This document shows positions 10,838 through 61,563 of a stretch of DNA of 64,000 bases, piece by piece. Source of the stretch: Hyaloraphidium curvatum SAG 235-1 (Eukaryota; Fungi; Monoblepharomycota); the NCBI GenBank assembly GCA_025558095.1, contig JAIVFI010000011.1:682001-746000 (forward strand), written 5' to 3'. Positions within the stretch are counted from its first letter, which is position 1, and every line of letters begins with the position of its first letter. The notes beneath the pieces are model-generated. The model saw nothing but the letters and a program-made list of their open reading frames with translations. It ran no database searches and was not told the origin of the DNA. The position numbers and the translations under genes are program-made.

Positions 10838-11061
10838 TGTTGGAGTGGCTATGGGGCGTGGGGAAGACGTAGCCCCAGTGGTCTGAACCGGGTCAGAACT
10901 CAGATGGACGGGATGGGGAGAGGGACAGTTTCACGTTGACCCGTTGTCCATTCCCTTGCGATGACAAGTCCCTAGATGACCCCTCCGGTCGTACCCAAGT
11001 ATCCCCACACGCCAATAGACTCCCTATTGAGATAGAATCGAAGCAACGATCCATTCCAACA
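10838..11061 (-). repeat. 224-bp Copia-type LTR with adjacent polypurine tract
   Basis: TGTTGGA...TCCAACA terminal inverted repeat; on the minus strand it is preceded by GAGGGGGAG (11062-11070); a second PPT-TGTTGGAA copy lies at ~11124-11147. Confidence 0.85.
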
Positions 11062-12510
11062 CTCCCCCTCGTTGCAAGATTCCCTCCAGTGCATATCAAT
11101 CCCAACAACGTAGCAATGCATTGTTCCAACACTCCCCCTCGTTGCAAAGTTGTCTCCCAGATGTGATCTCCGTTGCAAACCAGTTGCAGTTATCAAGTCA
11201 CTTTCAATACTCCCCTCCTGTCAAGAATCCCTGAGAAATCTCCAGTTTCACTTTCAAATCTCCACAAATCCCCGAAGTGCTTTGAAATGCTCAAACTTAG
11301 CTATCCATTTTTGGTCCTTCAAGTCCAGTCATTTGCATCACAGTGTTATGCACCTCTTGCTAGTTTCCTGCACACAGACTGGTTCTGCCTCGTTGCACAT
11401 TGCACAGATCCTTCTGCTGATTCTAAAGCAAAGCTCAACAGTCCCATTGCATGCGTGGTTTCTCCAGGTCCTTCCACCTGGTCAGTTTCCACCATTCCAG
11501 AGTCTTCCTAGAATGTCTGGCTCTTCCATTGGTCACATGCTCTCCTCCTTTAGAGTCCATCCAGTTGTCCTTCAAGCTTGTTGGCAAAGCACTCTGATGG
11601 TGTCCTTGCAACACCTCCTCCACGTGTCCCGTGTTGACTGGATCAAAAGCACATCTCCCAGAAAGTGATTCACCAACAGCAAGTTTCCCAGAAAGTGAGT
11701 CACCCTTCATCACTCCCCCTGAATCGCTTTCTTCTGCTCCTTCCAGGAATGGGTCGTTCCCTGTACAGTGCCCAAGAACATCTGTATCACCAATACCCTT
11801 TGTCTCTGGTTCACCACCCTCAGGATCCAGTTTGTTGCAAGCATCAGATCTCACAGACTCTCCATGCAGCTCCACCTCCTCCTGAATCATGTCTGGTTCG
11901 GAGTGATCTTCCATCAAAATGTCCCTGTCAAGTTCGCAAAGCAGCTGTCCATTTGCATCTTTAGTCTCCTTTCCCAAGTCAGCAACAAAATCTGTTTCAG
12001 CATCTCCATTCTGAACCAAATTCAAATCCCCCTGGTTATCCGGCATGTTCAAATCGTCTTGCATGAGTGTCTGCTGCATCCCTCCATATGATGCGTCCAG
12101 AATCTCAGCTCTGCTGAAAGTACTTCCACTTCCAGAGTCAGACCCTCCACTGGTCAGGTCACATGCCTCATGTCTTTCGAAATCAGAGCCTCTAGCTCCC
12201 TCTGCAAGGTATGGATCGTCCTCCACGATCTCTGCGTTCATCTGATACGAGCCGTTGTGCAAACTCAGTGTTCCCATGAGTTCACCCTCTGGGGAAAGAA
12301 TATTGCCACCCTCTGGGCCCAACAGCACCAGGAATCCCATCTTCACCACGCTCTCAATCGATGGCAATGCTCCACATCGATCTCCAATGTTTGCATCCTC
12401 CATCAAAGTGATGATCTTCCCTGTCAAGAACCTCAGTCTTGTGGCCCGAATACCACCCGCGGTCGCCGATCCCTTCGTGATCCCAAAGTCACGTAGGCCA
12501 CAAATATAAT
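11062..12510 (-). mobile_element. Non-autonomous Copia-like internal region (post-protease segment plus acidic ORF; no IN/RT/RH seen)
   Basis: LPSIESVVKMGFLVLLGPEGGNILSPEGELMGTLSLHNGSYQM resembles the Copia segment that follows the protease; region ends in PPT+LTR. Confidence 0.55.
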
Positions 12511-12613: not shown

Positions 12614-15182
12614 GACGGCGAGCACGACAGCACCTTGGGCTACGCAATTGATGCATAACTCCGTGCCGTCCACAAGGTATCGCAGTTTCTGCATCTGCTT
12701 GTCCGTCAGGTAACGGTTCTTGGATCGAATGCCGGCGGCGGCCAATGCTGTTTCCGAGAATAGGCGGCACGGTGTGCTCGGTATGAAGAGAATGTTGTCA
12801 AGCCGAACAACGGGTCCGCTCGTGCAAAAACGCACGTACATGGTGCCAGCCTGTGACACCTCCACGGGCCCCGTAAGTCCATGCACAACGAACTTGGGTA
12901 TCGAGTAGACTTTGGTCAGGTCGCTTAGGGTATTGGTGGAGTTGCGACTCGCGCCAGAATCGAAGAAGGAATCGCAGTTGTTCGCTCGGACATGGTTAAT
13001 GTACGCGCGAGCGTGTTGAGCTTGTACCATGCCGCTGTCGATGTCCTCCCCCGAAACAGCGTTGGACGTCACGGTCGGCATCACAGCGGCCTCCCCGCCG
13101 CCACGTAGTTAGTAGTCGAAGCCGTTGCCGTAGGTTGCTCCCTCGCCGGGCTCGTGGTCGTAGCCGACATAGCTGAGATCGGCTCCCTCACTGTCACCAT
13201 CCATCGAGCCATATCCCAGGAAGCCGAAGGCTGTCAGGCAACGCTGCGATGAAGATCGATCTGGGTGCGAGGCGGGTGAGTTACCTTCGGCAGCGGCGTC
13301 GCCTTACCGAGATGAACAGAGAGGATACAAATCGAATCAAAATGAGATAGCGGGACAAGGAACGGAAAATCAAGTCAGTATCAGTGGCGGATGTTGTGAG
13401 ATCCGAGGGGAGGTTTTCCGGGTTGAGGTGCGGTCAACCCGGGAAAACACAGCGACTCCCATCCCAAACTCCGTCACGCGGCACACAGTCACGCGCCGGG
13501 CCCGCGGCCCCTCCTGGCGCGAGGCAACCGCCGACGTCGAGCACCACGGCCCCTTCGCGACGCCGGGCCCACGGCCCATACTCTAGCGCCGGGCCCACGG
13601 CCCCTTCGCGGCGCCGGGCCCGCGGCCCACATTCCACGCGCCGGGCCCGCGGCCCCTTCACGGCGCTGGGCACCGCGGCCCTCTTCTTTGAGCGTCTGGC
13701 ACCTCGGCCCTTCGCGACGCGTGGCCTGCGGCCCTCCTCTCAAGCATCTGGCCCTCGGCCCTTCGGGACGCGGGGCCCGCGTCCCTCCTCTTCAACCAAG
13801 CGCCGAGCACCGCGGCCCCTTCGCGGCGCGGGCACCTCGGCCCTGACATCACCACCCGATGCTCACCCTCGCTGTGTTCCATCTGGCCATCTGCCAGCAT
13901 GGCGTACGGCTGCTGGGGCGGTGACGGGCACTCGCGCTGTACGTGCCCCTTGCCGTTGCAATTGTGGCACTTCTTGTCGGGGCACGCCGATGCCACGTGC
14001 CCCGGCTTGCCGCATTCGCGGCAGGTGATCTCACTGGTCACCGGAGCCGGCCTCCAAACGGCAGCACCAGCCGGGCGGTAGCTTGGGCCGCCCATCGGCC
14101 TCAGTGTCTGCGCGGGGTAGTAGCCGCGGCCTCCGCGCATGCCGCCACGTGCCAACCCGCGGCCGCGCATCCGAGTATCATGGCCCTGGCCTTGGATAGG
14201 AGCCATGCCACTCGGCCTGTAGCTGGGGTACGGAGCGTAGCGACCGTGCTCGTACCAGGGGCGCTGCGGAGGCCGACTGAGGATGCCACCACCACGGAGG
14301 GCTTGTTGGGGCGGCTGATAGGCAGTGAAGCCGGGTCCGAACCAGCAGGTGGTGGGAGCGTCGGGAGTGTCGCCGGAGCTGTCATCTTGACAGGTGCATG
14401 CGACATCTTGTTCCCTTGGGCTGTGTTAGCCGCATCCCGCATGCCATTGAACGAGAATGTTATACTCTCGCTCTTGCCGTCTTCGTCGAAGTGCCCGTCG
14501 TCGTCAATGACTCGGCCCCAGAATCCTTGGAGTTCTGCGAACGGGAAGCCTTCGATGAACGTCACCATCAAAGCCACGTCGTAGTCTGAGAGTGGTTTCT
14601 TGTGCGCAAGTCTCTCTGACTTGATACTCAGCAGCTCATTGAAGTTTTGGTCCACAGTCTTTGAAGCGTCCCACTGCCACTTGTTTACGCGGACTTGGGA
14701 CTCGTGTACCAAGCGCGCCTTTCCAACTTTGAACTTCTTGTGAATCGCGATCCAGAGGTCGTAGGCCGTCTTGGGCTCGTCGAACGCTTCCTGGAGGACG
14801 TCGTCGAGCATCAACATGAGCTCGCCGTAGGCCTTTTCGGCCGTCGTCCTGAACTTGTGTTCCGTGAGGATCGAGTGCGCGGCCTTCTCTTCCTCGGCAA
14901 GGATGGTCTGCCTCTGCCGGTCTGTGGTCTCTGGAGCGGCGCTGCGCTCAGCAGCCCTCTTGCGGGCCTGCTCGAGCTGCCAGTCGATGCTGAGGACGTT
15001 GTTGACGACGTACTCGTACATCCCAAGCTTGTTGAGGTAGATGGGGGCCTTGCGGTCCCACTGGACCATGTTGTCACCGGTGTTGAGCAGGATAGGCTTG
15101 TCGGCATCGTTGGCTGTCATCCTGTCACGGGCGGGCTTCCAGGGGTAGCAGGCACGTGTCAGAGCAGTTGAGACTCTTAATC
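12614..15182 (-). mobile_element. Truncated Ty1/Copia element: PBS, gag (ATG 15120, frameshifted), two CCHC knuckles, protease; interrupted by a solo LTR
   Basis: Gag KAYGELMLMLDD...TAYDLWIAIHKKF; CRECGKPGHVASAC and CHNCNGKGHVQREC; protease FFDSGASRN...VVRLDNILFIP; PBS at 15161-15182. Confidence 0.88.
13232..13848. repeat. 617-bp solo-LTR-like element containing a GC-rich tandem array
   Basis: Perfect TGTCAGG...CCTGACA termini; interrupts Copia gag; units of CGCCGGGCCCGCGGCCC plus a short spacer at ~13490-13845. Confidence 0.65.
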
Positions 15183-15292
15183 CTTTGTTCCCCTGGTCGC
15201 AGGCGCCCAGAGACAGGTGCAGATGAGGCAGGTGGCGTTCCTGGTGTTTGTTGTGTTATTCCCCTCTCCCTAGAGCCGCCCTCCTAGGTTAT

Positions 15293-15397
15293 TGTCTAGC
15301 CAAGATCCACCCATCCATCCAAGTCCAACATCCAACTCCAGGACCAACTCCAACTCGATCCGACGGCTCCAAACACATCCATCCATCCCCAGCAACA
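15293..15397. repeat. Family X ~105-bp solo-LTR-like repeat, copy 2
   Basis: TGTCTAGCC...CCCCAGCAACA, homologous to 12511-12613; right end joins directly to LINE sequence. Confidence 0.7.
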
Positions 15398-16156
15398 AGA
15401 AGGCCCCTAACGGCAGGGCAGCGGATGAGGATGGGATCAGGCTCGAGTTCGTCAAGTATGGGACCACTGTGCTGAAGCAAGCTGTTGTCGATCTGCTCAA
15501 CGACGTGCTCAATGGGGTCAACATGCAAGACTGGGGCCATGTCCAGACATTGCTGGTGATGCTGCACAAGAAGGGGCCCAAGAACGTGGCTGTCAACTAC
15601 CGGGGCATCAGCATAGAGAGGACACTGGAGAAGGTCTTCTCCCTGGTCTGGAACGCTCGGCTAGCTCCCTGGGCTGAGTGCAACAAGCTGCTGGAAGGCT
15701 CGCAGTTTGGATTCAGTGCACGGAGGTCCACCCTTCATACAGTGTTCCTCGCTGAGGCGCTCTTCTCCTTGGCCAAGGCACGCAAGGAGAAGCTGATCAT
15801 GGTGCTTGTAGATTTCACAAAGGCTTTTGACACGGTGGAGCGCTTGAGGTTGTGGAGGAAGCTGGAGGAGATGGGTGTACCCAAACAGGTTGTTGATATG
15901 TTCGAGATGGCGTTTGGGCGGGTGTGGGGAAGGCTCCGGGATGAGGATGGCACCAAGTCGGACTTTATCAAGTTCCTAACTGGAGTGAAGCAGGGGGACC
16001 CCCTCTCATCGCTGTTCTTCATCTTGTTCATCAACGACATCACTGCTTTCATGGAGGCCGCGCCAATGGTGCAAAAGGGATGGATCTGGGTGTTTGAGGA
16101 AGAGGAGGATCAGGAAAGGATGGTCAGCTTGCTGGCTTTGTTCTTTGCAGACGACA
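15398..16156 (+). mobile_element. LINE reverse-transcriptase fragment
   Basis: NYRGISI, QFGF, VDFTKAFDTV, GVKQGDPLS, ends at FFADD. Confidence 0.93.
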
Positions 16157-17214
16157 GAGGAGAAGAAGAATAGAATAGTATTGGTGACCCGGACCTGCAA
16201 CTGGCTTGGCCGCTGTTACACCATCAGTTTGCTGCTAATTTGAAGTTTGTCGTCGTGCATCTTTTTCATTTTCCCTGTTTTCTGTCCTTCATGGACTTTG
16301 AGATGAAGCTGGCAATGGAGTTGAGGGCCTTCTCCTTCTGCCGCCTCGCTTTGATCGTGGGCTCGAACTCCTTGATGCTAAGAGCCCAGAGCCAGGTCTC
16401 CATGTTCCACTCGCGGCCCAGTGCTTCCAGTCTGGTCTGCAGCTTCTGGCGCCGCTCTGCATTTGCTGAACAGTGGAACAGAAAGTGTTGTTCGTCTCCA
16501 ATGTGTTCAGGGTCATGCTTGCACGTTCTCTGCTGCACCTCAAGTCCTTGGTGCCTGCCTGTCTCCACCTCCAGGTCGTGGGTAGAGCACAGCAACTTTT
16601 GGACATCCCTCCGGTGCTTCTCCACCCGGATCAGGGATGGTCCGATGTGGCCAAAGGTCATGTCACACATCCTCCAAAAGTGCAGTTTGTCGTTGTCCTT
16701 GAGCCTTTGGGCATTGATCTCCCTGAACTTGCCCTTCACAAGATTCTCCACAGTCTCCTTGGGCCATGAGAAAGTGTCCTTCTCCCACATCTCCCTCCCA
16801 TCTTCGCCGCCATGGTATACAAGTAGTTCCCTCAGGAAGCAGCTGGAGGTCAGGACTCATCCCAGGCTGCTCCCTGATGTCATGGAGCCAGAGCCCATAA
16901 GCAGCGTTCATCTTGGCCTCTCTGTCATGCACATGGTCCTTGCTCCGGCCGGTTGAGGTCAGCTGATACCCCAGAAGCTTGAAGCTGTCAACCCTCTTCA
17001 GCTCCTGGTCCCTGTACATGAGCTTTACACGGTGAGGTATCCTCCTGGCCATCCACTCTGTCTTGCTGACGTTGATCTCCAGCCCATTGGCACTGGCATA
17101 TGCAGACAGAAGGTCCAGCTGCATCTTGGCATCCTTCACCGTCTTCGAGATCAAAGTGGTGTCGTCTGCAAAGAACAGAGCTAGCAAGCTGACCATCCTC
17201 TCCTGATCCTCTTC

Positions 17215-19260
17215 AGGACGAGGATGGGATCCGGCTCGAGTTCGTCAAGTAGGGGACTGCAGTACTGAAGCAAGCTGTTGTCAACCTCCTCAACGACGTG
17301 CTCAATGGCGTCAAGATGGATGACTGGGGCCAGACACTGCTGGTGATGCTGCACAAGAAGGGGCCCAAGAACGTGGCTGGCAACTACCGAGGCATCAGCA
17401 TAGAGAGGACGCTGGAGAAGGTCTTCTCCCTGGTCTGGAACGCTCGGCTAGCTCCCTGGGCTGAGTGCAACAAGCTGCTGGAAGGCTCGCAGTTTGGATT
17501 CCGTGCACGGAGATCGACCCTTCATGCAGTGTTCCTTGCCGAGGCACTCTTCTCCCTGGCCAAGGCACGCAAGGAGAAGCTGATCATGGTCTTTGTAGAT
17601 TTCACAAAGGCTTTTGACACGGTGGAACACCCCAGGTTATGGCAGAAACTGGAGGAGATGGGTGTACCCAAACAGGTTGTTGACATGTTCGAGATGGCGT
17701 TCGGGCGCGTGTGGGGACGGCTCCGGGATGAAGACGGGACCAAGTCAGACTTCATCAAGTTCCTGACCGGAGTGAAGCAGGGGGACCCTCTCTCGTCGCT
17801 GTTCTTCATCTTGTTCATCAACGACATCACTGCTTTCATGGAGGCCAATGGTGCAAAAGGGATGGATCTGGGCATGGTGTCTGAGGAGGAAGAGGATCAG
17901 GAGAGGATGGTCAGCTTGCTAGCTCTGTTCTTTGCAGACGACACCACTTTGATCTCGAAGACGGTGAAGGATGCCAAGATGCAGCTGGATCTTCTGTCTG
18001 CATATGCCAGTGCCAATGGGCTGGAGATCAACGTCAGCAAGACAGAGTGGATGGCCAGGAGGATACCTCACCGTGTAAAGCTCATGTACAGGGACCAGGA
18101 GCTGAAGAGGGTTGACAGCTTCAAGCTTCTGGGGTATCAGCTGACCTCAACCGGCCGGAGCAAGGACCATGTGCATGGCAGAGAGGCCAAGATGAACGCT
18201 GCTTATGGGCTCTGGCTCCGCGACTTCAGGGAGCAGCCTGGGATGAGTCCTGACCTCCAGCTCAAGCTCTACAACACAAAGGTCAAGGCAGTGGGCCAAT
18301 ATGGGAACCCGTTCATTGTTGAGATGCCGAAGGAGGAGTACCTTGCCGGGGAAAGCACCAGGGACAAAGTGACATGCATGGCTCTTCGTGCCGTCACTCA
18401 TCTGCCCAAGTCTACCTCCCTGGCCTGTCTGTATGCGATCACTGGCCAGTACCCCCTTGCAGTTCATGACCACGAGTCGGCACTCAAGTTCCTCATGCGC
18501 ATCAAAACAGCGGATCCTGCGCTGTACCTGCTCTACAAAGAGCTCAAGATCGAGGCACTGAAGGGGTCCTGGAACTGGGCTGCCTTCTTGAGGGAACTAC
18601 TTGTATACTATGGTGGCGAAGATGGGAAGGAGATGTGGGAGAAGGACACTGTCTCATGGCCCAAGGAGACTGTGGAGAATCTTGTGAAGGGCAAGTTCAG
18701 GGAGATCAATGCCCAGAGGCTCAAGGACAACGACAAACTGCACTTTTGGAGGATGTGTGACATGACCTTTGGCCACATCGGACCATCCTTGATCCGGGTG
18801 GAGAAGCACCGGAGGGATGTCCAAAAGTTGCTGTGCTCTACCCACGACCTGGAGGTGGAGACAGGCAGGCACCAAGGACTTGAGGTGCAGCAGAGAACGT
18901 GCAAGCATGACCCTGAGCACATTGGAGACGAACAACACTTTCTGTTTCACTGTTCAGCAAATGCGGAGCGGCGCCAGAAGCTGCAGACTAGATTGGAAGC
19001 ACTAGACCGCGAGTGGAACATGGAGACCTGGCTCTGGGCTCTTAGCATCAAGGAGTTCGAGCCCACGATCAAAGCGAGGCGGCAGAAGGAGAAGGCCCTC
19101 AACTCCATTGCCAGCTTCATCTCAAAGTCCATGAAGGACAGGAAAACTGGGAAAATGAAAAAGACACACGACGACGATGAACTTTGCAATTAGCAGCAAA
19201 CTCATGGTGTAACAGCGGCCAAGCCAGGGGCAGGTCCGGGTCACCAATACTATTCTATTC
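17215..19260 (+). mobile_element. 5'-truncated copy of the same LINE inserted antisense into the host copy; 631-aa RT ORF at 17298-19193
   Basis: Complete RT motifs through to the 3' tail CTATTCTATTC; the host sequence TCTGAGGAG|GAAGAGGATCAG is split around it. Confidence 0.92.
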
Positions 19261-20739
19261 ATCTCCTCAGACACCATGCCCAGATCCATCCCTTTTGCAC
19301 CATTGGCCTCCATGAAAGCAGTGATGTCGTTGATGAACAAGATGAAGAACGGCGACGAGAGAGGGTCCCCCTGCTTCACTCCGGTCAGGAACTTGATGAA
19401 GTCTGACTTGGTCCCGTCTTCATCCCGGAGCCGTCCCCACACGCGCCCGAACGCCATCTCGAACATGTCAACAACCTGTTTGGGTACACCCATCTCCTCC
19501 AGTTTCTGCCATAACCTGGGGTGTTCCACCGTGTCAAAAGCCTTTGTGAAATCTACAAAGACCATGATCAGCTTCTCCTTGCGTGCCTTGGCCAGGGAGA
19601 AGAGTGCCTCGGCAAGGAACACTGCATGAAGGGTCGATCTCCGTGCACGGAATCAAACTGCGAGCCTTCCAGCAGCTTGTTGCACTCAGCCCAGGGAGCT
19701 AGCCGAGCGTTCCAGACCAGGGAGAAGACCTTCTCCAGCGTCCTCTCTATGCTGATGCCTCGGTAGTTGCCAGCCACGTTCTTGGGCCCCTTCTTGTGCA
19801 GCATCACCAGCAGTGTCTGGCCCCAGTCATCCATCTTGACGCCATTGAGCACGTCGTTGAGGAGGTTGACAACAGCTTGCTTCAGTACTGCAGTCCCCTA
19901 CTTGACGAACTCGAGCCGGATCCCATCCTCGTCCTTTGCGTGCCTTGCCGTTGGGGGCCTTCTTCAAGACCCTCTCCAGCTCCTTGAGGGTGATGGGGCG
20001 CAGCAGGTCTCCAGAAGGCGTGATCGTGGCCTTGGGAAGTGGTGGAAACGTGAGCCTTGGATCCTCCTCGATCTTGGTCACGTACTCGGCGCTGGCGACC
20101 ATCTCCATGTGGCGCACCAGCTCTACAAAGGGCACGGGGTTGCCCTTGCGCCTTGCGTGAGCCTTTCCAAGCAGCTGGTAGTACCCCTTAGGCTCTCGCC
20201 TGAAGAGTCGCTCTAGCAGCTTGGAGTTCTCTCGCTCAGCAACCCTCCGCATCCTCTTCTCCAACTTCTTCCGCTCCTTCTCCAGCTCCCGCGTCTTCCC
20301 CTGGTACTCCTTCTTCCACTCATCCTTCTCCATGAGGGATCGCAGCTCAAGAAGGCGTGACAGCTTCCGATCGATCTCGGCCCTCTCTGCCGAGCCCGCA
20401 AAGCCGTTGAGGAACTTGTCCGCCTCTTCGTATACGCTGACCTTGTCGTACTTCTTCTTCGCGACCTTGTTCACCGCTGCCATGATCTGGATGAGCCGGT
20501 TGCACTTGTCGGATCCAGCTTGAAGTTGCTCGTACTCTTGCATTGCCTCCTTGACCCAGGGCTCGTCGTAGAGGTTTCGCATTATTGCGAGGAAGTGGAA
20601 GTCGCACGGCACGCCCTTGCAGTGCGGCTTGTTCTCCTTCGCAGCTGGCCGCACGAGGTTGGCCTTGATGGTCAGGCTCAGGGCCATGTGGTCTGAGGTG
20701 ACGACCCAGTGTTGCTGGGGATGGATGGATGTGTTTGGA

Positions 20740-21106
20740 TGTTAGACCACTGGACTAAAGAGAAGGTACCACGTCTCTGGCCCAAGTGGTCTGACGTCTA
20801 AGAGCATGTCACCATAGGGAACCAACACTCCCCCCCATGCCTTAGACGTCGAGGCCTCCCCCCGATCGCCCGCATAATACATCTCAGACGCCGGGCCCGC
20901 GGCCCCCATCGCGGCGTTGGGCTTCCGCGGCCCTAGGCTCCTGGGCCTATCTCACAAAACCACAAGCGCGACGACCAGGGTTCGAACCTCCGACTCTAGA
21001 GCAATGAGACTCTTAATCTGTTAGACCACTGGACTAAAGAGAAGGTACCATGTCTCTGGCCCAAGTGGTCTGACGTCTAAGAGCATGTCACCATAGGGAA
21101 CCAACA
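20740..21106 (-). mobile_element. TRIM (terminal-repeat retrotransposon in miniature), 367 bp
   Basis: Two 88-bp TGTT...AACA direct repeats (20740-20827, 21019-21106) differing by one C/T; PBS at 20997-21018; PPT at ~20828-20836; non-coding interior. Confidence 0.92.
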
Positions 21107-22382
21107 CCTTCCTTCACAAATGCAAGCTGGGTGACCGTCCCGTAGCGGCTCTGCGGCACGATTGCGTAGTCCAAGGTGCTGTCCCGCTCGCCATCCTTTC
21201 CTGCGCGAGTTGTTGCCCCCGGCTCGAGGCGCCCATTAAGGATCACCAGCTCCTCCTCATGGCACAGTGCAAGAAGCTGTTTCCCTCTCCGATCCGTGCG
21301 CTGCCCCGACCGGATTACACGCTTTCCGAAGCTCGTGCCACGCACATCGCTGTTTGCCTCGCTTATCCCCACATGTGCGTTCAGGTCCCCGATCACGATC
21401 GGCATGTCGCACCCAGCCACAATCCCTGAGAACCTCGACCACAACTCGTCCTGTTGTGTGTGAGTATGTCCTGCATTGGCGTCGGCGGTATGTACGCCCC
21501 CAGCACATTCACTCCGCCGACTTGGATCTGCACGACATCCAGGATCGGGTCCAAGTCTGTCCGTACGGTGTGCGGTAGCTCCTTTCGCACAAAGACCGTC
21601 AACCCTCCTCCACCATGCTCCGAGCAGCTCTTCTCATAAACCTCGAAAGTTTCCAGTACCGCGGCAACCTCTGCATGGATGTCGTTGTTGCTCATATACT
21701 CCTCCCAAGTCCGCTTCTCGCCTTTGCCCGTCCACCTTGCTTCAGCGAAAACGACGATATCGTACTCTACAATGTGTAGCAGCAGCTCACGTATAAAGAG
21801 GCTCTTCTCGAGCTTCCGCTCAACGTTTTGGTACAGTATCTTGAGGCATGTCCGAGTCTCATTTTCCTAGCCGCGCGCAGCACGCTCTCCAGCGTTCCCG
21901 CGTGCAGTCTGGCGCATCTCCCAAAGCTCGCGCAACTTTGCTTCGATCTTTTCCATGGTGAGCGTCGTTTCCAGGCCTGTTTCCGGCGGCGTGTAGACGA
22001 TCTTCGGGCCGTCGCGGCGGGAGGGAATCCCATCCTTCTCCATCTGCTGGACCAGGTGGTACTGCGCAGTAGACCGGTTCTTCTGCATCCACGTCTTCTC
22101 GCGGCTCGCATACGCAGCCAGGTGCTTCAGGGCTCCAGCCTCGTTGAGCCGAATGAGCGTCTCACGGTCCTCCTCGGTCGAGAACGTGAGCTGGAGGTCA
22201 AAGGTGCGATCTCCTGTGAGGTACCACTTGTCCACCACGATCTCCTTGAGCGCATCGGTCCGCTGAACGAGCACCTCACGGTCCTTGTGGTCGTGCGGCA
22301 GGTCGAGGGCGCTGCACTTGAGGAGGTCACGGGCACCTTCTCCGGTCTTCGCACTTTCGGGCGCCCGGCGGATCCTCCCTTT

Positions 22383-23143
22383 ACAGCTGACCCTGCATTG
22401 TACCTGCTCTACAAGGAGCTCAAGATCGAGGCACTGAAGGGGTGCTGGTGTACAGCTGGAACTGGGCTGCCTTCCTGAGGGAATTGCTTGTGTACTATGG
22501 TGGAGAGGAGGGGAGGGAGATGTGGGAGAAGGACACTTTTTCATGGGCCAAGGAGACTGTCGAGAATCTTGTGAAAGGCAAGTTCAGGGAGATCAATGCC
22601 CAGAAGCTCAAGGACAACGACAAGCTGCACTTCTGGAGGATGTGTGGCATGACCTTTGGTCATATTGCACCGTCGCTGATCCGGGTGGAGAAGCACCGGA
22701 GGGACGTCCAGAAGCTGCTCTGCTCTACCCACGACCTGGAGGTGGAGACAGGCAACCACCAAGGACTTGAGGTGCAGCAGAGGATATGCAAACATGACTG
22801 TGAGCACATTGGAGATGAACAACACTTTCTGTTCCACTGTTCAGCAAATGCAGAGCGGCGCCAGAAGCTGCAGACCAGACTGGAAGCACTGGGCCGCGAG
22901 TGGAACATGGAGACCTGGCTCTGGGCTCTTAGCATCAAAGAGTTCGAGCCCACGATCAAAGTGAGGTGGCAAAAGGAGAAGGCCCTCAACTCCATTGCCA
23001 GCTTCATCTCAAAGTCCATGAAGGACAGAAAACAGGGAAAATGAAAAAGATGCACGATGACAAACTTCAAATTAGCAGCAAACTGATGGTGTAAACAGCG
23101 GCCAAGCCAGGGGCAGGTCCGGGTCACCAACACTATTCTATTC
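22383..23143 (+). mobile_element. 5'-truncated LINE 3' end (second subfamily, matching the 9.9-10.7 kb copy)
   Basis: ADPALYLLYKELKIE...GDEQHFLFHC...; tail CTATTCTATTC. Confidence 0.92.
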
Positions 23144-33886: not shown

Positions 33887-35098
33887 TCAGCGTTTGATGA
33901 GGCCGTGCTGGTGTGGAAGGCGGGGTCAGCAGGAGAAGGAGATGACCGCGCCGGAACGCGTCGGACGGACCCACGGCTTCGGCTGCCCCGGCGAGCGACC
34001 TGGCGACGAACCCGAGGACGCTCTCGACCTCGCTGCGGAGGCTTCCCAGCGCCTCGACGTCGGCCAGGCGCCTGTCGAGGAACGCTTTGGTCTCCGCGCG
34101 GCCCGGGGACTTGTCCTCGACCATGAAGAGCTCTTAAGGATGAACATGGATGGTATGGTTGGCTTGCGCACGGTGGAATGGAGAGAGACGGGTTGCCTAC
34201 CGGTAGAGGAATAGACGGCTCCCAGCATCGCGCTTTTCGTGTACCACGAGACCTGTCGGCGAGCCGGCGCCAGAATAAGCAGCGGATCAAAGGCAGAGCT
34301 CGCTTGGAATGTGCTCACGTCGTTGGCTTGGTCTCCCGCAAAGTTCCAGATGACGTTGGCAAGGTTGGCAAGGTGGAGCGAGGCAGAAAGGACGTTGCCC
34401 GGAAGAACGAGCAGCGCGATGGCCTAGCAGAAGCGAGCAACGAGATGAATCAGGGCAATTCGGTGCGGACGCGATCGGCCAATGCCCACCTCGTGCCATG
34501 TCTCTGCGTAAGGCATGGTCTTTTCAAGGCGGGTCACGCACCCCAGCCTGATCTTCTGGGTGGTTCCCATCCTGTCCGCGAGCTTCAAATCAGTCCCCGT
34601 TCGTCTTCCGGCGCGTCGGGCAGGTACAGACTTTGACACGTCCATCCCCGACATCTCCCTCCCCGCCTCGTCCAGCGCCGTCGCCAAAAAGTACTCCACG
34701 AGCTGCACCGGGCCCCTCGGGAACAGCCCGCTCGCCGAGACGGTCGGAAGCCCCGTTTCCGCGGCTCCGTGCCTCAGCGCCGCGTCGGACCAGCCGAGCC
34801 GGGGGACGGCGAGGAGGGCGGCGCGGAGGATGGGGGTGGTGGGGTCCGAGGGGAGGTCTTGCGGGGCAGATGAATGCGAAGATGGTGTTGGAGGGTTCTC
34901 CGGGGCGGAATCGGAGAACGAGGGAGGAGGGACGGTGGAGAAGAGGCGCGGTCGCGTCGAGGCACGGAGCCGTCCATCGCGGGGCCGCGGGGCCGATTCC
35001 GCCCCGGCGATCGATCGCAGAGCATTTGTCCGAGGTTGAAGCAGGAGAACGAGGTCTGACGGAAGCCCCCTGCGCGCGTGGAAGCGCGCGGCGATCAT
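33887..35098 (-). CDS. COQ9: Ubiquinone biosynthesis protein COQ9
   Basis: ILRAALLAVPRLGWS, GLFPRGPVQLV, DVIWNFAGD, SWYTKSAML, DKSPGRAETKAFLDRRL. Confidence 0.88.
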
Positions 35099-35153
35099 GT
35101 TGTCGTTGGCGTCGCGCGACGGTTTCATAGCTCCGCGCAAACACCACTTCGAG

Positions 35154-35787
35154 ATGGGGAAGAAGAAGGACAAGGACCCTTCTGCGACCGTGCAGCACAA
35201 GGAGGCATTCATGCGGATGAACCACCTGTACCAGGCCGCGGTCCTGATGACCGGAATGGCGCGGGCGGCGGCGGCACCGGGGGCGGATGCGGCCTCGGAC
35301 CCGAAACCCGCGGAGAAGGCCAAGGAGGCGGCGCAGGACCAGTCGATGGTCAATCTGGGGTCGTACTACGCGCACTTGATGAGGACTGTGGGGAAGAAGC
35401 TCGTGATTCGGGCGTGAGTGGCGGCGGCACGCGTTGCCTGTCAACGTATGGAGGCGGTCCTCACCTTCGGGGCCCTCCAGTGACCCTTCGGTGAAACGGA
35501 CCATCTGCAAGTACTGCGATGCTGTGCTGCTGCCTGGAATAGGCGCCGATGTCCGGACGAAGTGTGCGTGCTGCGAGCTTTGGTCCCCTCTCCCGGTCCC
35601 GTCATCTGACATTGACTCGACAGCCAAACCGAACAAGCGGACTTCGATACGCTGCCGACGCTGCGGACGTGCGCGGTCTCTTGTGCACGCCGACCCCGAC
35701 TACGTTCCATTTTCGGTCCGCGCGGCGAGGAAGCCGGAGGATGCTGCGGCCCAGGACTCCGAGACCAAGGGCGTGATGGGAATTTGA
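35154..35787 (+). CDS. RPR2: RNase P subunit Rpr2/Rpp21
   Basis: RMNHLYQAA, DPSVKRTICKYCDAVLLPG, IRCRRCGRAR. Confidence 0.88.
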
Positions 35788-38693
35788 CACATGCTCTCCG
35801 ACTGGAATTGCCATCTATTCGATCGAAGCATCTTACTCTCCGTCACCCTGGCACGTTTAGATTCTGCACCGCTCTCTTCTGTGTCCACATCACTCATGGC
35901 CGGCCGTTTTGCTGCGGAGCCAGACGCGCCAGGGGCTGGATTCTCAAGCTGTGCGACCTTGATATCGTGTAGCCACTTGCGCACACGCCTCAGCGTTGCA
36001 TACCAGGTCCCTGCCACAATGCTGCTTATGCCCTCAGTGCGGAACTTCTCAAGCAGAGGCTCAATCTCCTTCTTTCTCCGACGCGATGTTTCCATGCTCC
36101 TCCTTTGATCCAGCTCAAGCACCTGCTTGTAGGTTGCTTCAGTAATCTCCGTGTAGCTCACGTCCCATTCATGTTCTTTCTTTCGCCTTTCAAGGGTCCC
36201 TGTGGTCTGGCTCCCTGTTTCTTCCGGCAGTTCAGTGACGAAACTTCCTGTTTCTTCTGGCAGATCTGCTTCCATGGGTGTTTCCTCGTGCTGTTGTGCC
36301 TTTTCCGTCAGCTTTTGAATATCAGCCAAGCAGAGCTGGATCTGCTTCTCCAGCTCAGCTCTGAGCTGATCATCCTCGCACAACTGAAGCTTTTGTTCCA
36401 GCTCATTTTTGAGACGGTCAAGCCTCCTGACATTTGCAACGGGCAAGCTCTTTATGTACTCCTTGATCCGTTTCTTGAAATGCTCCTTCTTTGTACCATG
36501 GCACGGAATTTGAGCAACGGCCCAACAGTATTCACGCAACATTGCTTTTGTCAGTCCACGAAAATCCAAAGTCTCGATTCTCTGGATATGACTCCTATCA
36601 ATAATGTCGGTATTGTAGCCATAATCAACCTCATCTTCAGGCACAAAGAGGTCGTCATTGATCTCCCCATTGATGACTAGAGGTGGCAACCCTAGGGATT
36701 CCAAGACAAATCCAAGCAAGCGTTCATGCCTTTGCTGAAACTGCTCCTTTCCAAAAGCAGGCTCATGGCGTCGACTACTGAGCTGTTGTACAGTGTGGAA
36801 CTTGGAATTGGCATAGACCCGCAAGACCTTCTCTACGAAAGGCAAGTTTCTTGCAGAGGAGTTGAGACTAGCTTCAAGTGGTGCTAGGTTGCCCAAGCGA
36901 TGAAGAGGTTCACCAGAGGCCCGATCACTGGTGGTGAAGAACAAGCGGTTCTCATCATCATCATTGGCCTGGGACCAAATATGCTCGACACTCCAATCCT
37001 TTCGGAAGATTGCATCAACATACAGCCGCGTTTTCATTCCAGAAAGATGTGCATCTTCCTCCAGACTGTTGGCCCGCATCACAACATAACGCATGGCAAC
37101 CTCTTTCATGCCCTTCGGCCCGTAGAGTGAAGCATTGAGAGCCCAACTGAGGTCCTTCTCTTCCTTTGAGGATAGTTCCAGGTCCTCCATATTTGGACTC
37201 AAAATCTCAAGGGCCCAAGCACAGACAAGAGCTTTCTGCATCCTGGTCTGAATATACTCCTTTGAGCTGTTACCTCCAGGGAAGAGATAGGCATGAAGGA
37301 GGATCTTCTCAAGAGCACGAAGTGCGCGTACCACCAATTCTGTTGTCTTGCTATCAGCGTAAAACAATGCATCAGAATCACCAGGCACTTCGTCTGCATC
37401 CAGCTTTATCAAGATAGCAAACACCACTGCTTGCCACAGGACAGCTTTGCCCCGAACTTCCGGTGCTGTAGCCATGTCCTGCAGCAGCAAGAGCCTTGCA
37501 AGAGCTCCATCAATGCTGCCCACAATTGAGGTTTCCGTCCTGGGAATGGCAATCAAGCGCTTGGCGATAGAGAAGATGCGACGGAAGAAATCAGCAAGGC
37601 CCTGCACTGCTGCTGCCCTCTCATCTGGTTGACATCCCATGGGACTGGGGGCTTCATAGACATGAAGTTACGAGCCCAGCAATGCTGGCAGGATTGAGCG
37701 ACATCTTCATGCACCATGCACGAGCAGCAGCCAACATCGTCTCGTCCTTCATGTCGCCCAAAGAAACCTCATCAGTTACCCATTGGCCCTCAAGCAGGTC
37801 CGCATCCTCAGCCAGATCAGGATCACCAAACTTCCTGAGTTCTGAAGTGATCTTCCACTTGAGCATCGACGAGGCATCCAGAGCCTCCCCAGGAGTGTTG
37901 ACAACACCAAACACACGGAGTGCAACGTTTTCGTTTCGAGAAATCATCTGGATCGCCAGGTCACACGTGCCCAGAGCATCATGGGGCAAAACCCATACAT
38001 TTACACATACGACGGATTCCAGAAGATACTCTGCAAACGGGAACGACGATTGACTATAATGACTGCCCTCGAATAGATCGTTCAGTTTGGATTGAACTGC
38101 TCGACAGATATGCGCAAACTTAGACTTGTCCTCATTCAGGGCTGGCCTTGTAGTTTCTAAAGCCAGTTTGCCCCAGTTTTTCTGCATGGGTGACAGTGTT
38201 AATGCCGAGAAGTCGGAGTTGTTTGCTTCACTAGTACCAGTGCGTGGGCGTCGTTCTTCCGCTGCAGTAGTCTTGGTTTCGGCCTGGTTTGAACAGTCCG
38301 GAGCACCTTGCAGAGAGTTTGCACCCATGAATCCCGATTATAGGGGACGAAGAACTGTTCCGCAGCAATGATTCGCAGAAGCGCGGCGGCCACGATAGAC
38401 ATGGTTGTGAATCGCTGCTGCCCGTCCACAATGCCTGCCTCCGTCGTGTTTTTCGTCAACAAGACGACTGTGCCGATGAAATACTGCTCATTCGCACGAA
38501 AACTCTTCCACAAGTCGACGACAAGGTCCAGAACCCGATCCAGTCCCCACACGTACGGCCGCTGGTATTCTGGAATCGTGAGCTGACCGTAGTCTTTGAT
38601 AAGTTCGTCGGGCAGGCCAAGGATTGGTGAGGTGGAAGTTTCGATGTCAAGCGATTGGCCCCGTTTGGGAGCAGGATTCGCTTCCGCTGCCAT
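35700..38693 (-). CDS. GmrSD/SspE-like DUF262 + DUF1524 (HNH) nuclease with SAP-like domain and NLS-like tail; spliced; 3' end and third junction uncertain
   Basis: IPEYQRPYVW, YFIGTVVL, IVDGQQRFTT, FGVVNTPG (FxxxN), SVEHIWSQ, RLGNLAPLEASLNSSARNLPFVEK; introns at 38182-38237 and 37948-37998. Confidence 0.88.
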
Positions 38694-38908
38694 CGCTTCG
38701 TGTGGGGGACCGAGTGTCTCGGCGCGGCGTGACCGTGACCCCGCGTGATGCTCTGTCCCGACTGCGTGCGCCCCATAAACTGCATCCGAGTTCGTCGGGC
38801 TTTCAAAATGCACCGTTGCACGCGTCAATTATTCGCTGCAATCCGTTCAATCGTTAGAGCATCAAAGCGGGGTATTACAAGTTGCCTATAGATCCCTCCA
38901 CACCCGGA

Positions 38909-41504
38909 TCAAAGCAAGCAGTCGTTGACCAGGTTCACGAACGACGCCGCCGCCACGCCCTGCCGCACCGTCTCGTCCAGGCACACGGACGTCTGCCGGT
39001 ACACGACCTCGAGCGAGGAAAGAGGGGGCTTCCCTTGCACCGCTGTGCGCAACACCATCAGTATCTGAGGCGTCAATAAGGGCGACGGACAACCAACCGA
39101 GAATGACGCCGTTGACCATGTTGGCGACGGGTTCCCGCGCCGCGGGCTGCAAAAGGTGCGCCAGCGGGCTCTTGAACGGGTCGCTGTACGCCAGCAAGGA
39201 AAAGCACTCCTGCGGCCGCGTGAGCTCCACTTCCACGATCTCCGACAAGCAATCGCACCTGCAACGCCGTGCGGAACGGCTCCCTCTCCTCCGCCCCATA
39301 CTCGTTCTGCAGCTCCTGCCCGTACGCCATGACCGTCGCCAGCAGATCCTCCTCCGGCTCTTTCCGCCTCCGCCGCGGCGTGCCCTGCGCCGAACGCGTG
39401 GACCCCACCATCCCCCCGTTCCGTAGCCGCGCCCTGCCCGACGACGCATCCACCTCCATCGCGTCCCCGTCCGAATCCATCGCCTCGTCCGAGTCGTCCG
39501 CCGGCCCGGGGCGCGCGGGGGTCGACAGCGCCATCCTGTCGTCGTCCGCGCGGCCACGCCGCGGCGTGGAAGGGGGCTGCTTGCCCCGCGCGGGGGTCTG
39601 CGGCTCCGCCAGGGCCGAGGCGCGCTGGGCCATCAGTCCGACCGTGTCGACGAAGCGGCGGACCTTGAGGTAGAAGGCCACGGGGGGGATTGCGAGGTCC
39701 TGCGGGCTCCCGGGGATGCGCGAGGCTTTGGAGACCATGGCGAGGGGAACGGGGTGCGAGAGGACGGTGGGGTGCAGCCGGTCCAGCATCTCGATGGCCT
39801 TGTCGATCGAGCCGTCCATGATAAAGTCCCGGATTTCTGCGACGCGGCGTCATGAGCACGTTCGACGTTCACTGGCCCACAGGATGAACCCACTCTGCCT
39901 GTTCTTGATCTCCTTGTTCATCAGGCTCGCCGACACCCACGCCTCGTTCCTCAACCCGCCCCGGCTGGCCATGCTCGCCGCGTCCCGCGGCTCCTCCTCC
40001 ATCTCCACGTCGTCCGCCCTCGCCGCGGCGCCGAGCGCTCCGTGCGCGAACGCCTCGGCGGTCTCTGTGTACCCCTGGTGGATGAGGTACGAGAGCACGA
40101 GGTCGTTGAGCACGTTGCGCGCGGCCTTGGGATGTCGCGGGTCAGAGTGGCCGTTGGTAGCGGGTTGCGAGAGGTCGAGCTGGGAGGATTGCTGGGAGTC
40201 GGGCGGCTGGGTCGAGGCGGCGGAGTTGAGGCGCTGCAGCGCAGGCGCCGGGGTCGTGGGGGCCGAAGGCGAAGCAACGGACAGCGGCAGGGGTATCTGG
40301 TGGATCTGCGAAAAGATCCGAGCCTTCGTTTCCTGCCCAAAATCGTGAGCGGAGGACACCTTCACCGAGCAAGCGACCCACCTTGAAGTACCCGTCGATG
40401 TCGAACCGGAACGGCCTGTGCCCAAAGTTGGCCTCCACCACCTCCCCCGGCGTCCGCAGCCCGACGGACGGGTACAGCAGCATCCCGAACGGCGCCGCCC
40501 CGGGCATCAACCCGCCCCTCATGCCCGACGGCGGCTCCTGCCGCATGTCCCGGAACGCGACGCCGAGGAACTTGCCGTTCTTGGTGAAGAACGCGGACCA
40601 GTTGCCCTCGGCAAAGTTGACGCCGCACCCGATCACGTCGCCCGTGGTGAAGGTCGGGCCGTAGGGCTTGCCCGTGCCGTAGCAGGCGAACGAGTTGCCG
40701 TCGTCGCCGTGGTAGCCCCACGAGCCCGGTTCCCAGCCCGGCAGGCGGTTCGTGGAGACACCTGCGTGCGAGAAGCCGATGCCGATGTAGCCGTCGCGGC
40801 CCTTGGAGACGATGTCGACCTCGAAGTAGTAGAGGCCGCACGAGGGGGGGACGGGGTGGTTGGCGCGCACGGCGGCCGCGTCGCTGTCGTTCTTGCCCGT
40901 TCCTGGAACACGGGATTGGCCTCCAACGCCGCCAAGGACGGAGCCCGGAATCACCGTTGTAGTTGACCGTGAGTCCCCCGTTCGCCAGCTGCAGCAGCGA
41001 GCACTTGTCCTTGGAATTCCACGCCGACGGCAACGGCACCGACGCGACCTGCGCCTCCGGCCCGGCAGAGGGCGCCGGCAGCCGCACCGCAAACTTCGGG
41101 CGTTCCGCCGGCCCGTCCTGCGGGGCGGCCCGCAGCGCGACGCCGACGGGGGTGTCGCGCAGGTACGACGGGATGCCGGGCGGGCCGGGCGGCACGTGCG
41201 ACGCGCGGCTCGGCGACGGCAGCGACGGCTCGGCGACCATCTCGTCGTCGTCGGGCGGCGTGCGGCCTGCCCCGCGGACGGCGAGGGACACCGGTCACGT
41301 GTTTGCGCGGGCACAGGCGGGCATTCCCGTGTTTCCGGTTCCGAGGCATTCAAGAGCAGTCAGAGAGGTGCGAATGGCGGCGCAGTTTGCCTCACCGCTC
41401 GCGGCGTCGGCGTACGTCTGCGGGTCGCGCGGGGGGGCCGCGCTGGACGGACCCGCCGTCGCGGTGCCCGTCGACCGCCGGCCCGGCGTGGACGCGTTCG
41501 TCAT
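38909..41504 (-). CDS. RanBP9/10-like CTLH/GID ubiquitin-ligase subunit (SPRY-LisH-CTLH-CRA)
   Basis: [86 protein letters not shown]. Confidence 0.9.
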
Positions 41505-59496: not shown

Positions 59497-59736
59497 TTCG
59501 TGCGGCGGGGCGAATAGGCGCCCCAGGCAAGAACAGAGAGCCGATCGGCGCACGGGGCGTGAGGGAGCGCCCGTCGGCGGCAGTGCGGACAGCCGACAGC
59601 GGAGCCCTCAAGGGATTGCACCGCCCTTCGCCACAACGGTGCGCCTTTCTGCGGTTGGGATTTCTGCGTGCGAGTGCGAGTGCGGGTGGGCGAGTTTGGG
59701 TGCCCGTTGGAGGCTTTGGCACTTCCGCGCTCCGCG

Positions 59737-61563
59737 ATGCCGCGGCAGCTCGCGTGTTTGGAGTGCCGGAAGTCGAAGAAAGACTGCCGCGTCCCGGCCG
59801 CCGCCGAACAGTGCGAACGCTGCGCCGAGCGCGGGTTGGCGTGCGTGGTGCCGACGACGATGGCCAAGCCCGGGCCGAAGGGGCCGCGCAAGTCGAGCGC
59901 GGCGTCGCGGAAGCGCCCCCAGGTGCGGGAGGAGGCCGTTCAGTCGCCGGCGTCGTCGTCTTCGTCTTCCGCCGCCCTTCCGGGACTGCCGCTGGAAGTC
60001 GTGCATATTGCTCCGCTGCCGGAAAACGCTGCAACTCTGGCGGCCCTCGCCTTTTTCTTCGAGCTCACCGAATCGCCGGCGCCGATGATCCACCGCGACG
60101 CTGCAGGTGCGCGCTCGCCGTTCTTTGTCGCCTCGGCGCTGGCGCTGCTGCCCTTTGGGATGCGCGCCGCCGGCTTCCACGTGCCCCCGGACTGGACGCG
60201 GTTTCCCGCCATGTACGCCGCGAGGGCGGCATCCGAACTCGCCGCAGTGTTGGACCGTCCTGAGGACCCGGGACCGGCCGCCTTTTCGGCGCTTTCGAAC
60301 ATCCAGGTCGGGGCTCTCCTGGCCGGGCGCTCCACCGTGGCAGCCCAGCTTTTGCAAACAGCTCACGCCCTACTGGCCAAGCACGGGTACCTTAGGCCGC
60401 TGCCGAAGTGGAGGGACGCCGCGGCCGCGGAACTGGGCCGGGACGCGACGCCCGCGGCATATCGCGCCCATTACCTCGAATTCTACTCGAGGATACGGAT
60501 CTCCAACAGCATCCTCCTGCAGGCTTACGTCTCGCGGGGCTGGACGCGCCGGCTGGATCTCATGGAACCTCTGCACCCCTCCCTGCGCCGGCCCGCGTTC
60601 CCCTCCTCCGTCGCATGGAGGCTGACGAACGCTCCGACGTTCGACCCCCGTAGCGTGCCGGTCGAACCGTTGCTCTGCGATGCCGTTGGCTGGATCGACT
60701 TGGCGCCGGGATCGTCCGAGCGCGCCGCAGCTCTGGCGGCCCTGCCGAACCTCCTGCAGCGGACGAGGCAGGCCCTGCCGTTCCTCGCCGCCGCCCTCCG
60801 ATGCCAGGTGGACCGCTTCCTCGTGGGCTGCAGGCTGGCGGGCCTGCACTCGCCTTCGGAGCTCCCCGTTTCCCCTCCGGGAGACCTTCCCCGGCCGCTC
60901 GCGTCCCTCGTGTTGACGCGGGACTCCCTTTCGCGAACTCTCTCGGAGGCGCTTTCGGCGATCCCCGCCGAGGCCCAACTGGCCTTCAGCACGGGCTCCG
61001 CGGAGGCCCTTGTTTCCGCCTTTCCCACGTCGACCCCGGCCCACGCCCGGAACCAGGCCCCGCTGTACCTGGCCCTCGCGCTCCTGCCCCTGGAGCTGTG
61101 GACGAGCTTCGGCCTCCCTTTCGCCGGGGAGGACCCCTCCGACTCTGGCACCAGGCTCGCCCTCGAGATGTCGCACCACCCCGGCCTGCTCGCCTCGGCC
61201 ATCAGCACCACGCGGCTCCTCAGGTCCCTGACCCGCGGCGCCCCCGTGCTCAACCACACGCCCTACGCGATCGCGCTGTCGCTGTGCCACCTCCACGGGT
61301 CCGCCTTCCGGCTGCTTTCTGCGCGGCTCCCCGGGTCCCCCGCCGCGCTCGAGTGCCGGCGGGACGCGGAGGACTGCCTGGACATCCTGCGGGGCTACTC
61401 GGGCGCGAGCCCGGGGGCGGCGGCCGCGCTGCGCTGCGCGATCGGGGTGGTTTCGGGGGCGGGATTGGCCAAGGAGGAGTTCGACCGGGCGATGTTTGCG
61501 GGGGAGGGCGAGGAGAGGGAGGGGGTCGAGGAGCTGCTGGCGGCGTACGGCAGGGACGGGTAG
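59737..61563 (+). CDS. Fungal Zn(II)2Cys6 transcription factor, intronless
   Basis: ACLECRKSKKDC...CERCAERGLAC. Confidence 0.88.
   Translation: MPRQLACLECRKSKKDCRVPAAAEQCERCAERGLACVVPTTMAKPGPKGPRKSSAASRKRPQVREEAVQSPASSSSSSAALPGLPLEVVHIAPLPENAATLAALAFFFELTESPAPMIHRDAAGARSPFFVASALALLPFGMRAAGFHVPPDWTRFPAMYAARAASELAAVLDRPEDPGPAAFSALSNIQVGALLAGRSTVAAQLLQTAHALLAKHGYLRPLPKWRDAAAAELGRDATPAAYRAHYLEFYSRIRISNSILLQAYVSRGWTRRLDLMEPLHPSLRRPAFPSSVAWRLTNAPTFDPRSVPVEPLLCDAVGWIDLAPGSSERAAALAALPNLLQRTRQALPFLAAALRCQVDRFLVGCRLAGLHSPSELPVSPPGDLPRPLASLVLTRDSLSRTLSEALSAIPAEAQLAFSTGSAEALVSAFPTSTPAHARNQAPLYLALALLPLELWTSFGLPFAGEDPSDSGTRLALEMSHHPGLLASAISTTRLLRSLTRGAPVLNHTPYAIALSLCHLHGSAFRLLSARLPGSPAALECRRDAEDCLDILRGYSGASPGAAAALRCAIGVVSGAGLAKEEFDRAMFAGEGEEREGVEELLAAYGRDG

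Follow-up and report, generated by a model that had tools for sequence, protein, structure and literature searches.

A foreign-looking GmrSD-type nuclease gene with a frame break between its two domains in the fungus Hyaloraphidium curvatum

The window analysed here, a stretch of 64,000 nucleotides from the fungus Hyaloraphidium curvatum SAG 235-1 (assembly GCA_025558095.1, contig JAIVFI010000011.1, positions 682,001 to 746,000 of the forward strand), carries on its minus strand a gene whose two ends encode the DUF262 and DUF1524 domains of GmrSD/SspE-type restriction nucleases. The reading favoured here, with moderate confidence, is that of a single-copy foreign gene from a rare and so far undescribed eukaryotic branch of the GmrSD family, derived from another eukaryote, recently acquired and recently inactivated, and not domesticated: a one-base shift separates the two domains in the genome and in the RNA alike, the base composition of the gene is foreign, and its relatives lie on eukaryote-type contigs. 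The copy in the window is most likely a young pseudogene and probably non-functional.

The two domains and the break between them

Three long open reading frame (ORF) pieces on the minus strand span 35700-38828; homology searches were made exon by exon, with these pieces kept separate. The first piece matches the Pfam domain PF03235 (GmrSD_N/DUF262; E 4e-20, 73.2 bits against a curated cut-off of 33.2, and 73.4 bits in a genome scan) and the third matches PF07510 (GmrSD_C/DUF1524; E 3e-12, 47 bits against a curated cut-off of 23); they also match the first and the last ~100 positions, respectively, of the same ~560-residue PADLOC models (HEC-06, Orf5 and SspE). The three DUF262 signatures and the His-Me finger motifs of DUF1524 are present where the initial annotation had placed them: on the minus strand, IPEYQRPYVW with its QR motif (38547-38576), VDGQQR (38412-38429) and FGVVNTPG, the FxxxN motif (37888-37911), were read from the sequence and aligned with relatives, and VEHIWSQ (36969-36989) and HRLGNLAPLEASLNS (36846-36902) were read from the sequence. 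Residues E219, H220, G250, N251 and L252 of the finger are invariant across the alignment termed A3. The Pfam and PADLOC matches, a spliced intron and the fungal character of the assembly, in which Fungal_trans (PF04082) matches 74 times and in none of 14 prokaryotic control genomes, bear out the earlier proposal that a two-domain nuclease gene of GmrSD/SspE type resides in a fungal nuclear genome. A look-up of CCT-eta placed the host no further than among the eukaryotes.

Exon 1 (38238..38693, minus strand) begins with an ATG at 38693 and contributes the 152 codons of the N-terminal part of DUF262, as recognised from Pfam, the N-termini of the PADLOC models and the motifs; its end is set by an RNA joint. 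This joint (38181/38238) lies in a contig of X1, a public sequencing run of the same organism that is recognised as RNA by its spliced contigs, and it delimits intron 1 (38182..38237, minus strand; 56 nt, GT..AG, phase 0, 48% GC). Removal of the intron joins the first and second pieces in frame, and the alignment with relatives runs unbroken over the junction. Exon 2 continues in frame A (37654..38181, minus strand) with 175 codons for the second half of DUF262, collinear with residues 192-328 of the metagenomic relative P0001, and stops with a TGA at 37656-37654. The remainder lies in the frame-B ORF (35700..37640, minus strand), 646 codons from an ATG at 37640 that encode a helical linker, DUF1524 as recognised by Pfam, and further C-terminal parts, with 41% identity to P0001.

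Frame B, shifted by +1 relative to frame A, is open only from 37667, and the break thus falls within 37654..37667 (minus strand), as delimited by the sequence, tblastn and RNA. From 36278 to 38181 the X1 RNA contig is unbroken and shows neither a joint nor any substitution or indel. In tblastn, residues 192-328 of P0001 align with 38058-37657 in one frame and residues 327-743 with 37661-36429 in the other, and P0002, a second metagenomic relative, switches frame at the same place (37657/37661), its protein aligning without interruption. Because the RNA is continuous and the homology collinear across the two frames, the break is the signature of a one-base shift in a once-continuous coding sequence and not an intron. 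The gene had been annotated as spliced and intact, with its domains joined in frame; the intron at 38182-38237 is indeed spliced, whereas the second supposed intron is the +1 frame break, and the TGA at 37656-37654, where the RNA is unspliced, interrupts the frame between the domains. Standard decoding yields 152 + 175 = 327 residues with DUF262 only, and as sequenced, in genome and RNA contigs alike, the gene does not encode both domains in one polypeptide as GmrSD does. Since the homology is collinear across the break, the sequence clearly points to an ancestral gene that encoded both domains in one polypeptide. Besides the break, ~970 codons are free of any stop, which requires that the break either arose recently or is tolerated.

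Could the gene nevertheless be intact, with a second spliceosomal intron or a minor isoform removing the stop and restoring the full DUF262-DUF1524 protein? Frame-restoring GT..AG pairs exist on paper, such as a 70-nt GTAACT..GCAG stretch at 37671-37602, but the candidate donor is weak, and second-frame similarity to P0001, which starts at 37661, extends across the candidate intron. The linker is of variable length, P0004 being shorter there; the first frame nonetheless aligns with relatives right to its stop. Finally, contigs can miss rare isoforms, yet no joint is reported at this place even though all six other introns within 4.5 kb were captured. An intact gene therefore appears improbable.

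The same can be said of a gene that functions despite its break, either through a +1 ribosomal frameshift (CUA-UGA-A, antizyme-like) or as two polypeptides in the manner of GmrS and GmrD. Either route would suit two frames that are open over ~970 codons and overlap by 14 nt. Against frameshifting, there is no stimulatory RNA structure 3' of the break (folding of the downstream 111 nt gives z = -0.09), and a tRNA on a CUA codon in the P site re-pairs poorly in the +1 frame. Translation as two polypeptides could start at the second-frame ATG, 14 nt beyond the stop; against this, eukaryotes rarely translate ORFs that follow one of 327 codons. Both domains lie in one uninterrupted ORF in the relatives P0001, P0004 and P0005, and the gene of P0002 is interrupted solely by an intron shared with the window gene; in some bacteria, separate GmrS and GmrD proteins have been described (PMC4619093).

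Downstream of the nuclease domain, the frame-B ORF encodes on the minus strand a SAP-like stretch (36453-36554), a coiled-coil-like stretch (36282-36374), a C-terminal module (about 35970-36170, from alignment A1) and a basic tail resembling a nuclear localisation signal (35844-35909). The SAP profile (PF02037) finds no match in the window copy even at E <= 10; the copy would be SAP-like by position only, through alignment with the SAP domains of P0001 (E 1.2e-6) and P0020 (E 6.2e-6), which fall on 36453-36554. The C-terminal module ("W/F-D-V ... T-R-x-x-Y ... W-x-x-L-R-x-R") appears once in the window gene and three times in P0002, and P0001 has it too; it measures ~70 residues, is uncharacterised and has no Pfam match, and in P0002 its copies lie within residues ~520-813. 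Within DUF262, before the third motif, the window copy carries an insertion of 18 amino acids (37957-38010, minus strand) that is absent from all relatives and resembles a diverged tandem duplicate of the strand that follows. An in-frame GTATGT..CAG stretch of 63 nt (37948-38010) was considered as an intron and rejected: it is unspliced in the RNA, and its removal would take away residues that have aligned counterparts in the relatives.

In the predicted model of the linker and nuclease region (pLDDT 79), the strand-strand-helix order around the finger motifs would fit a His-Me finger. The top eight PDB matches of this model in Foldseek belong to DndI, the C-terminal domain of SspE and BrxU, and are weak (E 5e-3 to 4.5e-2, TM 0.27-0.45, probability 0.72-1.0, 10-17% identity). 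At the level of sequence, exon 1 best matches SspE and a DUF262 protein in the PDB, again weakly (E 0.06-0.08), and a PDB sequence search with ORF3 gave no match. Family knowledge (PMC4619093, PMC8565348 and PDB titles) suggests that the intact protein would have been a nuclear, nucleoside triphosphate (NTP)-regulated nuclease acting on modified or foreign DNA: NTP would be bound in the ParB-like domain and DNA cut by the His-Me finger, probably depending on a modification of the bases or the backbone. The SAP-like stretch and the basic tail may have added nuclear DNA targeting.

Foreign composition and relatives in other eukaryotes

The gene lies in a compositional island of 3.1 kb (35788..38908) with 51% GC against 67% outside, delimited by segmentation, stop codons and GC content at third codon positions (GC3). 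A two-state maximum-likelihood segmentation places the island at 35780-38944, with GC 0.514 inside and 0.673 outside, and the GC profile drops from 0.66-0.70 to about 0.50 across the nuclease gene. Its GC3 is 0.51-0.64, against 0.82-0.93 in host genes, and its intron has 48% GC against 55-69% in host introns. The island amounts to the whole interval between coding sequences, from the stop of the neighbouring RPR2 gene to that of the RanBP9-like gene, and the codon composition of the nuclease gene is not ameliorated toward the host. Since this composition is foreign, horizontal acquisition of the gene is likely. The initial annotation had proposed a horizontally acquired and domesticated nuclease; composition speaks for the first part, and the broken frame and unameliorated codons speak against the second.

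An old, vertically inherited fungal gene whose low GC arose from local mutation bias (CpG decay or weak expression) is the alternative at this point, and an unlikely one. It draws on CpG depletion, the observed/expected ratio being 0.75 for the island, against 1.15 for its flanks and 0.5-0.6 for transposon-like regions of the window, and on the homologues of C5 DNA methyltransferases found at at least four loci of the host genome (cited beside these observations are C12:523184-524251, C4:762134-762625, C4:158154-158768 and C12:548189-549250 of the host assembly, G000). Because CpG is depleted and several such homologues exist, there is a hint of transposon-like methylation of the island. However, a GC3 gap of about 0.3 over a still-open ORF is too large for mild CpG depletion, and the boundaries of the island coincide with the stop codons of its neighbours. 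The intron and the eukaryotic relatives do show a long eukaryotic history, but the GC3 of the P0001 gene departs from that of its own host the other way (0.45 against 0.12-0.22), and the other DUF262 gene of the genome has native composition. Repeat-induced point mutation (RIP) was considered as the cause of the low GC and rejected, with TpA/ApT at 0.44 and the ORFs open. The other DUF262 gene (C32:467851-469299 of G000; 454-1902 of L003, minus strand) has 70% GC and no DUF1524 and is a different, resident DUF262-only lineage; in a profile scan of the assembly, the nuclease gene is the sole occurrence of GmrSD_C.

Relatives were sought by exhaustive HMMER (phmmer) search of 1.84 billion protein representatives, which gave 14 matches, the nearest of them with 37-41% identity and in about five clusters. 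The metagenomic relatives fall into the groups P0001/P0015/P0020, P0002/P0016, P0003/P0017, P0004 and P0005, headed by P0001 (988 aa, 41% identity in phmmer, E 3e-49) and P0002 (813 aa, 40% identity), with P0003 at E 1e-27 and P0004 at E 1e-13; over linker and nuclease in alignment A3, identity to them is 29-40%. The exhaustive search was needed: a word-indexed protein search with residues 1-340 of ORF3 found no match. A profile search with alignment A1 added P0020 only, and scans of viral and metagenome contigs with alignment A2 found nothing.

P0001 has GmrSD_N, GmrSD_C and SAP domains and is encoded on a metagenomic contig of 563 kb that is intron-poor and AT-rich, next to genes for CCZ1-longin, USP, ABCF/eEF3-like, cyclophilin and formyltransferase proteins; because of these neighbours, its host is a cellular eukaryote. 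A giant virus was considered as the source of this contig and rejected, the mimivirus-type promoter word being at chance level and the neighbours cellular eukaryotic. The gene of P0002 (L006) adjoins an intron-split Med7 gene and has a 67-nt intron two residues before a conserved Trp, at the same position and in the same phase as intron 1 of the window gene. In a quick maximum-likelihood tree, the relatives form a clade on a long branch, apart from the ordinary GmrSD proteins of 550-650 aa (SH-aLRT 100). With relatives on eukaryote-type contigs, SAP domain and C-terminal module in common and a shared intron, the donor was probably a eukaryote and not a bacterium.

Direct acquisition from a bacterium or phage, with the intron gained later, would accord with a family that is overwhelmingly prokaryotic (PMC4619093) and with PADLOC models that match both ends of the gene, but it is very improbable. 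The best prokaryote-type matches in the HMMER search fall short of the eukaryote-type ones by 20 orders of magnitude or more, and alignment A2 meets a single match in GTDB, weak and bacterial, of 34% identity over 78 residues; a relative has its intron at the same position, and the SAP domain and C-terminal module are common to the relatives in eukaryotic context. The "bacterial-type" label given to the gene, and the direct bacterial origin that it implied, are accordingly not upheld by the separate clade, the shared intron, the added modules and the lack of a close bacterial relative.

The composition of the relatives adds to the case for movement between eukaryotes. The gene of P0001 (L004 8001-10967) has a GC3 of 0.45 against 0.12-0.22 in six neighbouring genes, and that of P0015 (L007 4327-7302), whose product is 95% identical, shows the same anomaly on a syntenic contig. 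P0003 and P0017 (L013 45-1064; L014 646-1620) consist of the linker and half of the His-Me finger, without DUF262, in fragments of ~63% GC that abut DNA of 32-40% GC, and they are truncated relics. The genes of P0002 and P0004 show no GC3 anomaly in their own hosts. An island or decay is thus seen in three of the five host lineages with context, a small sample, which suggests repeated eukaryote-to-eukaryote transfer and turnover of the family, with decay following. A bolder generalisation, advanced as a tentative possibility that is rather unlikely, is that these genes form an undescribed, eukaryote-specific clade combining GmrSD, SAP and the C-terminal module, which moves horizontally between nuclear genomes as naked single-gene islands with fast gain and break; if true, this would parallel, in nuclei, the fast turnover of defence genes or selfish nuclease genes in bacteria.

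For the window gene, the favoured sequence of events would begin with its arrival from another eukaryote, probably a fungus, as a member of this rare eukaryote-associated GmrSD branch with its intron already present. A +1 break with its TGA, which is probably very young because ~970 codons hold no other stop, would then have cut the DUF262 half from the nuclease half, and this inactivation may stem from harm done by a modification-dependent nuclease in a self-methylating genome.

Several points weigh against a foreign, recently inactivated gene. The two long frames remain open throughout, as would also be expected if the gene were split but functional or were recoded; rare isoforms drop out of contigs, and a minor frame-restoring splice form could be missed; and the break is covered in one strain only, by its genome and the X1 RNA. 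The transposons of this host are typically low in GC as well, and the island shows mild CpG depletion, so that the contrast could partly reflect methylation-driven decay and not donor composition, the insertion itself being deduced from composition alone. As to the architecture, the SAP assignment of the window copy comes solely from alignment with relatives, Pfam being blind to it.

The locus, its neighbours and their transcripts

The housekeeping neighbours named in the initial annotation, RPR2 and a RanBP9-like gene, are borne out by Pfam matches to Rpr2 and LisH, respectively. The RPR2 gene (35097..35787, plus strand) has introns at 35414-35480 and 35564-35623, placed by RNA joints and by its spliced translation; the LisH/CTLH (RanBP9/GID-like) gene, of which the 3' part is described here (38909..40425, minus strand), has introns at 39043-39097 and about 39209-39257 (minus strand), likewise from RNA joints. 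Joining the exons of both neighbours in silico located the stop codons that bound the locus, that of RPR2 ending at 35787 and that of the RanBP9-like gene being 38909-38911. Over its final 29 codons (35700-35787), the nuclease ORF runs antisense to the coding sequence of RPR2; the original stop codon of the nuclease gene seems to be missing at the edge of the island. Synteny was also approached through P0037, a homologue of the RanBP9-like protein (48% identity), and this was uninformative, the gene downstream on that contig being a P450 gene.

A search of the 3.2-kb stretch against the host assembly (31.9 Mb, 55 contigs) finds the nuclease gene in single copy, and no terminal inverted or direct repeats, tRNA or Rfam features were found around it; the locus thus lacks these marks of a transposable element, in agreement with the annotated absence of flanking transposon ends. 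The transposons of the host genome are in general GC-poor and CpG-depleted. Elsewhere in the window, stretches of lower GC (52-58%) lie at 5000-11500 and 14000-22500; a reverse-transcriptase ORF (17298-19193, RVT_1) sits within one of them, and an ORF of the same length occurs again at 59668-61563.

The X1 run captures two introns of RPR2 and two of the RanBP9-like gene along with intron 1. One RNA contig of 3.1 kb extends from within the nuclease gene (36278) through the exons of the RanBP9-like gene, and another leads from RPR2 exons into the island up to 36129 and then across a plus-strand intron. Because RNA contigs span into the exons of both neighbours, the nuclease gene is linked physically, by independent data, to both flanks, a link that the initial annotation had left to be checked and to which a metagenome contig also attests. 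Transcription of the gene is seen on contigs that it shares with its neighbours, and resembles read-through from them. The plus-strand GT..AG intron (36129..36194; joint 36128/36195, on a contig with spliced RPR2 exons) is antisense to the C-terminal module of the nuclease ORF and reads as part of a read-through 3' untranslated region of RPR2. The RPR2 transcript appears to extend at least 500 nt beyond its stop into the island (35788-36307), and unspliced contigs across the region of the plus-strand intron are also present.

Metagenome contigs from rhizosphere (X2) and freshwater (X4) match parts of the island and the RPR2 junction (35562-35830, 36101-36496 and 37746-38027) with 99% identity or more, outside the frame-break interval of 37654-37667. 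Since they match both island and junction, the same organism, with the nuclease gene in place, occurs in environmental samples.

Relation to known systems

Prokaryotic immune genes in eukaryotes are of current interest, and the locus and its few relatives define a eukaryote-adapted form of one of them, with an intron, a SAP domain, a C-terminal module and a tail resembling a nuclear localisation signal. The probable non-functionality of the window copy limits its own importance, and it is the intact P0001 and P0002 that merit assays. The C5 methyltransferase homologues of the host offer a testable reason for the inactivation, as a modification-dependent nuclease might harm its own genome.

The full two-domain architecture is not new to eukaryotes, as had been suggested for this gene: two-domain GmrSD homologues were reported in diatoms, green algae and Heterolobosea in 2015 (PMC4619093), and a survey of 2017 counted 263 eukaryotic DUF1524 sequences, with close homologues in Agaricomycetes (PMC5714182). 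These previously reported genes likewise reside in nuclear genomes and were read as transfers; in contrast with the window gene, no SAP/C-terminal-module architecture, intron or expression data are given for them. A literature search found no description of the SAP-bearing clade or of introns in such genes, and no functional study of any eukaryotic GmrSD member.

The metagenomic relatives share the architecture of the window gene, with the SAP domain in P0001 and P0020 and the intron in the gene of P0002, but P0001, P0004 and P0005 are uninterrupted, P0003 and P0017 are relics, and the GC of the hosts differs widely. Among the structurally characterised systems, BrxU (7P9K/7P9M), SspE (6JIV/7DRI) and DndI (9JFL) give the best, albeit weak, structural matches to the linker and nuclease model, and in PADLOC the window gene scores higher with HEC-06 and Orf5 than with SspE. 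Unlike these systems, the window gene adjoins no BREX, Ssp or Dnd partner genes; the association with sspABCD or dndBCDE that marks SspE and DndI is absent, its neighbours being the housekeeping RPR2 and LisH/CTLH genes. The closest parallel in domain order is with the type IV enzymes Eco94GmrSD and CT596 GmrSD, in which a DUF262 ParB-like NTPase, a helical linker and a DUF1524 His-Me nuclease follow one another as they do here, and whose QR, DGQQR, FxxxN, EH and GNL motifs are kept in the window gene. In comparison with these, the window gene adds ~400 C-terminal residues (SAP-like stretch, coiled-coil-like stretch, conserved module and basic tail), and it is nuclear, carries a spliceosomal intron, belongs to a distinct clade and is broken in frame between its two domains.

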